Below, piece after piece: positions 16,179-19,299 of a DNA stretch of 64,000 nt. The position numbers and the translations under genes are program-made. The number at the start of each line of letters is the position of its first letter. The first letter of the stretch is position 1. Origin of the DNA: Basidiobolus meristosporus CBS 931.73 (Eukaryota; Fungi; Basidiobolomycota); NCBI GenBank assembly GCA_002104905.1, contig MCFE01000072.1:1-64000 (forward strand). Reading direction: 5' to 3'. The notes below the pieces were generated by a model. The model ran no database searches, was not told where the DNA came from, and worked only from the letters and a program-made list of their open reading frames with translations.

Positions 16179-16429
16179 GACAAATGTTGCTTTAATTCCA
16201 GTTATATCCCAATACGATTGTGTGTGCCAACAGTGTGCTTCTCAGTCTAGCTACAGCATAGAAATCAGATTCCAAATTACACTGCCCTTGATGATTCCAA
16301 CAATATCCCACCGTGACTAAAATAAATCAAGGACAATTGGCTAATCGAACTATCAACAGAAAATTGACCAAAGGTTTTAGAATTTTTGTAAACATGGTTT
16401 TGGATGGAAGATCAGTAATTAATAATAAA

Positions 16430-16559
16430 CACGCTCAGCTATCTCACTGCAATCGGGTACAATAGTTTCTCGCGATGCTTCCACTCCCGAAGGGCTTCAA
16501 CAAAGCAATCAACTAATAGTTAGACTCCCGCCATTGGCATGCAATATCATCAGCGCGTG
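16430..16559 (-). ncRNA. Candidate box C/D snoRNA-like RNA, copy 1
   Basis: The minus strand reads CACGC-gc-UGAUGA ... CUGA-GCGUG: box C, box D and a 5-bp terminal stem, with an internal cUUCGg hairpin. Near-identical to 17859-17989. Confidence 0.6.
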
Positions 16560-16782
16560 ATATGTATATTAATTGTAATTGCAGTCTTAGGTTATAACTA
16601 AGACGTAAAGATTCTGTGTTCAAATGAGTCTACTTTATATGAAACTGTTCAAGATGATAACTTATGGGAAAGAAAGATTTTCAGTCATCTCAGGGTATAC
16701 CTAAAAATCACCTAAAAATCACCATAATGATTTACCTTAATAAATTTTCTTCTGTTAGTAACTCCGCACTTGTACGGTAACC

Positions 16783-17681
16783 ATGTTGTCAGTAGCAATC
16801 AAACAGAGTTTCGGAAACGTTCGCAGCTTCAGCACCACTGCCTTAAACAACACTCCCCATCTGGTTCAGGTTTGTCGTTGGTAAATTCTTTTAGCTACTG
16901 AAACCTCCTTTTCTCATTTCCATTTTTGCTATCAGGTTGAGAGCTCCATTAAAGGAGGAAGTTTTTTGGTCTCCCGAAGATTAGCCGAGCGCCTTCAATA
17001 CCAGTATACACCGTATTATGATTTCCTCAAGGCCGTTGTGTTCAAAGTAAAGGCAATTCATATTCAACTTGGCGGCATGACCACTACTAACCAGGAATTT
17101 CCGCCACTAGGGCTTCAAGCAGGAAATAGTCAACCGTAGAGAGCTACCCAACGATTTTCGGGAATTTCATTCAGTTCGTTAAGGAAGCCCCTATTGCTGT
17201 TGCACCAACATCCAAGTTTGATATTGAGATTGAAGGAGAAAATGTCACTGGCGCTGCTCTTTCTCACCGCGAGTTAAATAAGGTTGCCAAGAGCTTGTTG
17301 CAGCAACGCCAAATTGAAAAAGCCGTTACCGATCGATTCTATGAGATTGTCAAACAATCCACCGCCGGAGGCGTTGTCTTTCCTGGCGCCAACAATCTTC
17401 ACAAGATGGTTGATTTCAAATTCTTCTTGGAAGAGGATATTCGCTCCAGAGCTAGAAGAGAATTCAATCGGATCAAATGGCGTGACTCCCGTAAGAACGT
17501 GCTGAAGATGGACGATCTTGTTCAACAAATCCGTAAGGCCGAGATGAACCTTGACCTTCGTAATATGAAGAAAAACGCCATCATCGTTAAGGCTGACGAT
17601 ATCGACATGGAGGAGTTAGTTGAAACTTTAGCATTGAAAATTTTGGAAAGTACAGGCGATCAAGATCCATTAGAGCATTAG
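16783..17681 (+). CDS. Mitochondrion-targeted cytidylate kinase (Cmk)-like protein with degenerate P-loop, two introns
   Basis: Presequence-like MLSVAIKQSFGNVRSFSTTALN. The segments RRLAERLQYQY, IEGENVT, GGVVFPG, KFFL, RARR and AIIVKADDIDMEELVE follow the order of bacterial Cmk motifs. Confidence 0.65.
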
Positions 17682-17858
17682 TTTATTTCTCATTTCCTAT
17701 GTACATCATATAAGACACAATAAACCATTTATAGAACATTTCAACCGTATAGTAGGAATTCCCATAGATATTTGGATCTTTCAAAGTAAACTTTGCAGGA
17801 ACAAGGATACAGCACTGAATTTACTCGGTTTTCTTTTAAAATGTTTGAAAATATAGTA

Positions 17859-17989
17859 CACGCTCAGCTATCTCAATGCAATCGGGTACAATAGTTTCTC
17901 GCGATGCTTCCACTCCCGAAGGGCTTCAACAAAGCAATCAACTAATAGTTAGACTCCCGCCATTGGCACTGCAATGTCATCAACGCGTG
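17859..17989 (-). ncRNA. Candidate box C/D snoRNA-like RNA, copy 2
   Basis: CACGC-gu-UGAUGA ... CUGA-GCGUG. Homology with copy 1 extends upstream to 18044 (16614 in copy 1). Confidence 0.6.
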
Positions 17990-18222
17990 ATATGTATATT
18001 AATTGTAATTGCAGTCTTAGGTTATAACTAAGACGTAAGGATTCAAGGGTACAAGTTCTGCACATATATACAGGTTGCTCACCATCAATAAGTTATGGGA
18101 TTGAACCTGTTTGCTCGAAATCAAGAAATATGGAGAATTTTTCCGGAAAAAAAGAAATGTTGTCACTTTAATACATAATAACACGAACAATTTATACAGA
18201 CCAAGGAATCCCGATAGTAATA

Positions 18223-19299
18223 TTACCTGATTCTTTCCAGTCGCTTAGTCGCAACTTTCATCTTGGATTGTGAGACATCAACATCTTGGCTTAACTCCGA
18301 CAATAATTGATTATGTGTATCCAGCTCCTGGCCAATCAGCGCCCCTACCCGCAGTTGGCGCTTTAGAATCTCACTAAATTGCTCCAAGCTAGTATTTTGC
18401 TTTTGCATCATTTGTTGTTGGAGATTGATTAAGCCGTCACTATCAAGTCCTGAGGTTTCTTCAACGTCTTTAGGCATCACTTTCGCGTTACCGAATACAC
18501 GCGAGGAAAACGATCCCTTCTTAGGGATAGTCCGCAGAGATGAATATGAATCCCGTCTATTGATGAGCGTTGCCGGTGGTGATTTCGGACTCTCGTGAGC
18601 ACCCACGGCTACACGTTCGGAGAGTATTGATATTTCATCAGATAACTTATTCAATTTGTCTCCACGACGAGTGCGTTCCCATTCCGAAATAACTGCGTCC
18701 TCTTCCCCTACACCAGCCAAATATGCTAGCCCATTCTTTAGAGTATTCAGACGTTGATTTAGCAACGCTATCTCTTTCTTTACCTGGAAAGTGAGGTTGT
18801 GTGCGGCCGCAACCTCTTGTTGCGAGTAGTGATTATCTCTACGCAACAGGTTGGTTCGGCTTTGCCTGATCATTTCCTTGATAGTGTGCACTTCGTCTAG
18901 CCAACTTTCCGAGGTAAAGTTTTTGGCAAGATCGAGATTCTTAACCTTGGGCACATCTAAAAAACCTCTCCATTCGGCGGTGTCTCTCCAGCGAGAATCG
19001 GCGTCGTCAAGTATGCTTTTCAGATACCTTGCCAGGCCTTCTCTTCTCTCCTCAATGGATTCTATCCCCCTGCAGCTGGAGAACAAGGAGTATATTTTGG
19101 GTGGAAGCTGATACGGGAGCGGCTGTTTGGGAAAGCTTCGAAGAAAGCTCGCGTTCAGTCGATAGAACTCACTGTATCGGCGATACACTGACCACCCACG
19201 AACTCCTCCCTGTACATCGATTTTATAAACGATGTGTACTGAAGGGCTGTCTCTTACTTCCACGGTGGTAATGCGTATCGATTTGATCACTTCAGCCAT
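18223..19299 (-). CDS. VAM7: PX-domain Qc-SNARE, intronless
   Basis: N-terminal PX domain (VYRRYSEFYRL, LPPK, ERREGLARYL) and C-terminal SNARE motif (QNTSLEQFSEIL...IGQELDTHNQLL). No TM helix. Confidence 0.88.
   Translation of the reverse strand: MAEVIKSIRITTVEVRDSPSVHIVYKIDVQGGVRGWSVYRRYSEFYRLNASFLRSFPKQPLPYQLPPKIYSLFSSCRGIESIEERREGLARYLKSILDDADSRWRDTAEWRGFLDVPKVKNLDLAKNFTSESWLDEVHTIKEMIRQSRTNLLRRDNHYSQQEVAAAHNLTFQVKKEIALLNQRLNTLKNGLAYLAGVGEEDAVISEWERTRRGDKLNKLSDEISILSERVAVGAHESPKSPPATLINRRDSYSSLRTIPKKGSFSSRVFGNAKVMPKDVEETSGLDSDGLINLQQQMMQKQNTSLEQFSEILKRQLRVGALIGQELDTHNQLLSELSQDVDVSQSKMKVATKRLERIR

Follow-up and report, generated by a model that had tools for sequence, protein, structure and literature searches.

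A nuclear gene of Basidiobolus meristosporus CBS 931.73 with three exons occupies 16783-17681 (+) of the window, i.e. of the whole 64,000-nt stretch of DNA analysed here. The observations as a whole are best explained (probability about 0.68) by an expressed Basidiobolus pseudoenzyme of 255 aa in which a mitochondrial-type leader precedes a complete but dead cytidylate kinase (Cmk) fold, and which would function by non-catalytic binding of a partner. The dead-Cmk part of this explanation, taken alone, is highly probable.

Gene structure and a surplus base

The gene was read on the plus strand from an ATG at 16783, which is aligned with the start of the orthologue in B. ranarum, to a TAG stop at 17679-17681. 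Its best protein matches are P0001 of B. meristosporus CBS 931.73 and P0002 of B. ranarum (K7432_013043, 255 aa). P0001 is the product of the public JGI model at this locus, K493DRAFT_312504, and is identical to the window gene over the shared exons. In addition, B. ranarum possesses a paralogue, K7432_009634 (P0003), with 31% identity to the window protein. The gene and its surroundings comprise the following features:

16783..16869 (+): exon 1, 29 codons; N-terminal, presequence-like extension that ends 4 residues before the first Cmk core strand
16870..16935 (+): intron 1, 66 nt, GT..AG, phase 0; joint 16869->16936 in the spliced contig of run X3
16936..17046 (+): exon 2, 37 codons; encodes the degenerate P-loop (ESSIKGGSF) together with helix 1, strand 2 and the first part of the former NMP-binding helix (YQYTPYYDFLKA)
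17047..17110 (+): intron 2, 64 nt, GT..AG, phase 0; acceptor AG at 17109-17110; joint 17046->17111 in the spliced contig of X3
17111..17681 (+): exon 3 and stop codon; remainder of the Cmk fold with NMP-domain insert, core strands, former lid and C-terminal helix; one surplus base as assembled
17155..17159 (+): TTTTC run with one base too many; frameshift, with a stop at 17180-17182 if read literally
18223..19299 (-): intron-less open reading frame, 358 aa, encoding a PX domain (PF00787, 52 bits)

Contigs of four public runs were compared with window positions 16600-17900 (1,301 letters). X1 and X2 are genomic contig sets, and X3 is the run with a spliced transcript contig. The gene is transcribed and spliced: the transcript contig of X3 contains both exon joints listed above and is continuous over 17111-17550. 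Intron 1 occupies a homologous position in the orthologue P0002 and in the paralogue P0003; the acceptor of intron 2 is conserved in the orthologue, and the position of this intron is common to the paralogue. Exon 2 encodes the most conserved part of the protein. With the surplus base omitted, the coding sequence has 768 nt, and its product of 255 aa can be aligned with P0002 free of gaps at 82% identity.

A preliminary description of this DNA had located the gene correctly but had derived a spliced product of about 250 aa. Its acceptor for intron 2, 17129, is wrong; the 249-aa product to which it leads was ruled out by the spliced contig and by colinearity with B. ranarum. Only its chance distance of 19 nt downstream from the true acceptor allows it to restore the reading frame. 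Residues 67-82 of the corrected product are accordingly GFKQEIVNRRELPNDF and not STVESYPTIF. The JGI model P0001 contains a third mini-intron of about 44 nt (window 17111-17220), explained by its avoidance of the stop that the surplus base creates. This intron, which costs P0001 14 conserved residues, was likewise ruled out, as the transcript contig reads straight through. A public gene model, whose splicing goes astray at an assembly indel, is thus corrected by the analysis. In the public record, the protein of K493DRAFT_312504 is named only hypothetical.

At 17159 one letter is missing in all three runs that cover the site (X1, X2, X3), and the window is one base longer than B. ranarum at 17155-17159. 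An assembly error is favoured as the source of the surplus base because the CBS 931.73 assembly is PacBio-based (PMC7466969) and the two indels that the genomic runs contradict are located in T runs. Alternatively, the window copy might be a genuinely frameshifted allele or a decaying duplicate, with only another allele being functional. Read literally, the copy does run into the stop at 17180-17182 after the surplus base; moreover, the run contigs differ from the window by three substitutions in 1.3 kb (17146, 17741, 17806), which fits alleles better than PacBio errors, and the intact form is known from contigs of three runs that all belong to one study. Even so, this alternative is considered unlikely, given that the indels rejected by every genomic run (16922 and 17159) are of a type typical of PacBio errors, that no contig of any run has the surplus base at 17159, and that the window copy is otherwise intact, with no further defect. 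The substitution at 17146, where all three runs (X1, X2, X3) have C instead of A, is synonymous.

The run contigs further depart from the window by a 1-nt indel at 16922, within a T stretch of intron 1, and, in the 3' flank, by substitutions at 17741 and 17806 and indels at 17837-17846. Either the window assembly is imperfect at these sites or it represents another allele.

A direct repeat of 186 nt was noted on both sides of the gene (window 16429-16614 and 17858-18044, plus strand). The same pair flanks the orthologue in B. ranarum (locus L001, 672-858 and 2154-2340). Repeat copies share 97-98% identity within a species and 83-84% between species, a pattern that suggests concerted evolution or selection. 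The repeats were rejected as tRNA or known RNA genes, as ARAGORN found no tRNA and Rfam gave no match at E <= 1. Farther downstream, the PX-domain gene is syntenic with a PX gene of 359 aa downstream of the B. ranarum orthologue.

Relationship to bacterial Cmk and the N-terminal leader

Exon 3 alone matched the Pfam family Cytidylate_kin (PF02224) with 23.3 bits (E 6e-5; profile positions 55-206). Scores of the window's own pieces (23.3-24.4 bits) were slightly under the gathering score of 26 bits, a shortfall caused by the frameshift in the assembly and by the mis-splicing of the model. The orthologue P0002 (31.5 bits, E 1.8e-7) and the paralogue P0003 (42.2 bits) exceeded it, with profile positions 3-209 covered. 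A profile built from 79 bacterial Cmks scored 33.6 bits against the corrected window protein, compared with a maximum of 14.1 bits among 9,000 shuffles. When a profile of only the two B. ranarum paralogues was run against the PDB, nothing but Cmk chains appeared below E = 1, all matched over their full length (E 0.0036-0.24); single-protein sequence searches of the PDB returned chance matches only.

The sequence is colinear with Cmk from the first strand to the last helix. Colinearity of segments with bacterial Cmk had been proposed in the preliminary description, and every motif match listed there was reproduced by alignment: (i) RRLAERLQYQY with RRLAxxLGFxY; (ii) EGENVT with DGEDVS; (iii) GGVVFPG with GGVVMEG; (iv) FKFFL...RSRARRE with FKFYL...ERARRR; (v) AIIVKADDIDMEELVE with AILIDTSxLSIEEVV.

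The structure of P0002 was modelled with AlphaFold (pLDDT 79.5, pTM 0.77) from an input alignment of 7 rows, four of which are bacterial Cmks, so that the model is biased toward the Cmk fold. In a Foldseek search of the PDB with this model, the best 21 matches were all Cmk (E 1e-11 to 4e-8), followed by the next match at 6e-5. With VIA-align, an aligner independent of Foldseek, five Cmk representatives reached Z values of 17.2-20.5 and the next fold 12.8. The nearest structures to the single-sequence model of the ESM Atlas, which is without the alignment bias of the AlphaFold model, all belonged to PF02224 clusters (TM 0.65-0.72). Profile scores (P0002, P0003) and fold alike place the family in Cytidylate_kin by homology, and the assignment of the window protein as a homologue of bacterial-type Cmk is supported at both levels.

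None of the four best-matching bacterial Cmks that were aligned has an equivalent of the first approximately 25 residues of the window protein. These residues are rich in Ser/Thr and include K7 and R14, and no Asp or Glu occurs before residue 31. Counted over the first 25 residues of the window protein, P0002 and P0003, there are 2-4 Lys/Arg and 4-7 Ser/Thr. A leader motif recurs in all three proteins as R14-S-F-S-T in the window protein, R-S-F-S-T in P0002 and R-L-F-S-T in P0003. As intron 1 is located four residues before the first core strand, the leader is essentially encoded by its own exon.

In the classical pattern of the matrix peptidase, an arginine is found two or three residues before the cleavage site. 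The leader shows the sequence features of such a presequence, namely positive charge, absence of acidic residues and an arginine at -2/-3 of a plausible cleavage site. Exon 1 would thus encode a cleavable, mitochondrial-type leader of some 20-25 residues ahead of the complete bacterial-type Cmk fold, and these features point to import of the protein into mitochondria. A pseudoenzyme that is not mitochondrial, and whose extension is a linker or another signal for action in the cytosol or nucleus, appears improbable. Such a protein would be in keeping with the hydrophobic moment of the window leader, which is moderate (0.49), and with a survey in which few bacterial xenologues of early-diverging fungi carried mitochondrial transit peptides (bioRxiv, 10.1101/2021.12.02.471044). 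It is harder to reconcile with the preservation of R-x-F-S-T and of the lack of acidic residues between paralogues of merely 31% overall identity, with the absence of the extension from the aligned bacterial Cmks, and with its disorder in the model (residues 1-21 of P0002, pLDDT < 50). Import into mitochondria is retained as a predicted property of the protein, for which the sequence gives good support.

Active site, selection and origin

At the P-loop position the window protein reads ESSIKGGSF, which does not conform to the Walker A motif GxxGxGK[ST]. The Walker A lysine (Lys18 in E. coli numbering) is replaced by serine in the window protein, in the orthologue P0002 and in the paralogue P0003, i.e. 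none of the three has an intact P-loop. The GRD motif (Gly-Arg131-Asp132) is missing, and the RDxxDxxR stretch reads RKAEMNLDLR. Further E. coli residues are replaced as follows: R41 by Lys, S101 by Lys, R110 by Glu (Gln in P0003) and R181 by Met or Ile. D185 is not conserved, Glu or Val being found at this position depending on the alignment; R188 is Leu (in the window paralogue) or Lys, with a gap in one alignment. The losses agree across the HMMER alignment to E. coli Cmk, the MAFFT alignment and the 82-row alignment. Sixteen of 24 near-invariant columns are replaced and eight are kept in the window protein, these columns being defined by a conservation of at least 93% among the 79 bacterial Cmks and by a location outside the two motifs used to fetch them.

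In Yersinia Cmk, Arg41, Arg110, Arg131, Asp132, Asp185 and Arg188 contact CDP, and the variants R110A, R131A and R188A are folded while their activity is abolished (PMC3603445). This CMP-binding set of the functional enzyme (R41, R110, R131, D132, D185, R188) is not retained in the window protein. Against the NCBIfam equivalog for (d)CMP kinase, TIGR00017, only 20.1 bits were obtained, compared with a cut-off of 135.55. Taken together, the residue losses support a window protein that is catalytically dead and would be unable to act as a Cmk enzyme. The loss of the P-loop motif, of DGRD and of the RDxxD lid, and with it the proposed lack of catalysis, had been claimed beforehand and is borne out here: the P-loop lysine and the CMP-binding arginines and aspartates are replaced, and three mutations of this kind inactivate the Yersinia enzyme (PMC3603445). 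With the catalytic residues absent, the name '(d)CMP kinase', which UniProt assigns automatically to the B. ranarum proteins, misleads as to their function.

Comparison of the window gene with its B. ranarum orthologue gave pN 0.097 and pS 0.79 (saturated), and for exon 2 the values between species were 0.012 and 0.69, respectively. Over residues 30-66, a segment that comprises the former P-loop, helix 1 and the former NMP-binding helix, identity reaches 97% between orthologues; for the paralogues it is 46% in this segment and 23% in the remaining protein. Purifying selection on the gene is strong and has its focus in residues 30-66. As these residues are conserved most, the remodelled former nucleotide cleft would be the most constrained surface. 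The attributes of a pseudoenzyme are all present, i.e. loss of catalytic residues, a spliced transcript contig and purifying selection.

The introns of the P0003 gene are at exactly homologous positions and both in phase 0, and exon 2 has 111 nt in both genes. This old paralogue has in common with the window protein the Lys-to-Ser change, the R-x-F-S-T leader motif and the loss of both GRD and the lid arginines. Its loop is less degenerate (APLGIGSGT), the protein is more basic (pI 9.2), and the C-terminal helix differs from that of the window protein. From the shared introns, leader motif and Lys-to-Ser change it follows that the duplication came after intron gain, leader gain and lysine loss. 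In B. ranarum, P0003 is encoded about 500 nt downstream of, and on the same strand as, a gene for a COX24_C-domain protein, a mitochondrial protein (locus L002, 466-926, plus strand); this neighbourhood is probably coincidental.

An exhaustive search of 1.84 billion representatives retrieved only six proteins at E <= 1e-3: P0001, P0003 (E 3e-19) and, at E ~1e-4, four proteins whose Cmk motifs are intact, two of these four being named 'cytidylate kinase' by their source. A profile word search for further relatives added none, a word search that used exon 3 as query retrieved no protein beyond the two orthologues, and among ESM Atlas clusters without a Pfam name only weak bacterial matches were present (0.80-0.81). 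The dead-Cmk family is confined to Basidiobolus in current databases.

A search with bacterial Cmks returned 80 loci, and a tree was calculated from the three Basidiobolus proteins and 79 bacterial Cmks of 12 phyla. The Basidiobolus proteins formed one clade (SH-aLRT 99). Their branches reached the ceiling of the program at about 10 changes per site, compared with a bacterial median of 0.45, and are thus some 20 times longer. The clade attaches to a bacterial polytomy on saturated branches and without a resolved bacterial sister, so no bacterial donor can be named. Since 2-5% of Basidiobolus genes are reported to be of bacterial origin (PMC7466969), horizontal transfer is plausible. The most likely ancestor of the window gene is a bacterial cmk that was taken up by the Basidiobolus lineage; acquisition would have been followed by the gain of introns and of a targeting exon, and then by duplication.

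Proposed role and comparison with known systems

In the favoured explanation, the fold would no longer bind ATP via a Walker A lysine, nor CMP via the Arg/Asp set of the family. Once imported, the protein may act without catalysis as a binding or scaffold protein for a partner or ligand. The partner would be held by the remodelled former nucleotide cleft, with the signature V-x-V-E...G-S...R-x-L-A...Y-Q-Y-x-P...L-K-A-x-V-F-K.

A narrower version assigns the protein to a specific mitochondrial machine. According to the preliminary description, it could have been co-opted as a structural or regulatory subunit, with complex I, the mitoribosome and the nucleoid as candidate sites. The analogy drawn on is NDUFA10, an accessory subunit of animal complex I with a deoxynucleoside kinase fold. 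Several observations are compatible with such an accessory subunit: the Cmk fold was retained under strong selection while catalysis was lost, the window protein has a presequence-like leader, fusions of bacterial Cmk with ribosomal protein S1 occur in some cases (as in a structure match of the ESM Atlas), and Fap7, a protein with an NMP-kinase fold, binds a ribosomal protein (PDB 4cw7, a weak structural match). The proposal nevertheless did not hold up well and is judged quite unlikely. A Cmk-type subunit is present in no solved complex of the PDB. The sole complex I chain among the matches listed, 7v2c_w, which we take to be NDUFA10, is a generic P-loop kinase match (TM 0.39/0.33), and NDUFA10 belongs to another kinase subfamily. 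The mature protein has a pI of 6.3-8.6 and is thus not strongly basic as is usual for mitoribosomal proteins; furthermore, restriction of the family to one genus would be unusual for a core subunit. The same low expectation applies to the fuller scenario, in which a captured bacterial cmk gained introns and a targeting exon, lost catalysis and was duplicated, and in which its two products now serve a mitochondrial machine (mitoribosome, nucleoid or respiratory complex) as accessory subunits or assembly factors peculiar to the genus. If true, the conversion of an enzyme obtained by horizontal transfer into a structural protein of an organelle would here be recent and traceable.

That the protein is still an enzyme, as a phosphotransferase or nucleotide-binding protein with a non-canonical site (e.g. 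Lys35 inside the degenerate loop), is very improbable despite the retained Cmk fold, the Gly37 and nearby lysine in the loop of the window paralogue, and the presence of R179 (in the window paralogue also of K169 and R182) in the ATP-side helix, as the loop lysine is not conserved in P0003 (which reads GIGSGT), every residue whose mutation inactivates Cmk is lost, and the TIGR00017 score is far below its cut-off.

The favoured explanation therefore remains that of a dead Cmk with a mitochondrial-type leader and a non-catalytic binding function. No description of a dead bacterial-type Cmk, or of one with an organellar leader, was found in the literature searched, and the search yielded no paper on cytidylate kinase in connection with Basidiobolus, nor one that treats this kinase together with pseudoenzymes and mitochondria; this agrees with the preliminary description, whose author knew of no such protein. 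Pseudoenzymes with a P-loop kinase fold are already known, NDUFA10 being the textbook case. The Basidiobolus family is evolutionarily young and narrow in range, comprises two paralogues and has a recognisable ancestor, and is thus tractable for studying how a fold is re-used after loss of catalysis and which surface takes over; here the region of the former P-loop and NMP-binding helix is the most constrained.

With bacterial Cmk (PF02224/TIGR00017; E. coli 1CKE/1KDO, Yersinia 4E22, Mycobacterium smegmatis 3R20) the Basidiobolus protein has the full-length fold in common, including the Cmk-specific insert of the NMP-binding domain; in the structural alignment, 209 of 213 residues were matched (Z 20.5). 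It differs from these proteins by its N-terminal extension of 25 residues and by two spliceosomal introns in its gene. A bacterial-type Cmk fold is also found in a eukaryote, the microsporidian Encephalitozoon cuniculi, whose cytidylate kinase (PDB 7L4A) has a Z of 18.8 to the model. Unlike the Basidiobolus protein, it was crystallised with two CDP molecules and hence binds nucleotides, and it is no nearer to the Basidiobolus protein than are the bacterial Cmks (18-20% identity). NDUFA10 is alike in concept, in that the fold of a P-loop nucleoside or nucleotide kinase is kept in mitochondria in a non-catalytic capacity, a location that for the Basidiobolus protein is predicted from its leader. 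However, NDUFA10 is of the deoxynucleoside kinase and not of the Cmk subfamily, its structural match to the model is weak, and it is widespread in animals, whereas the Basidiobolus family belongs to one fungal genus.
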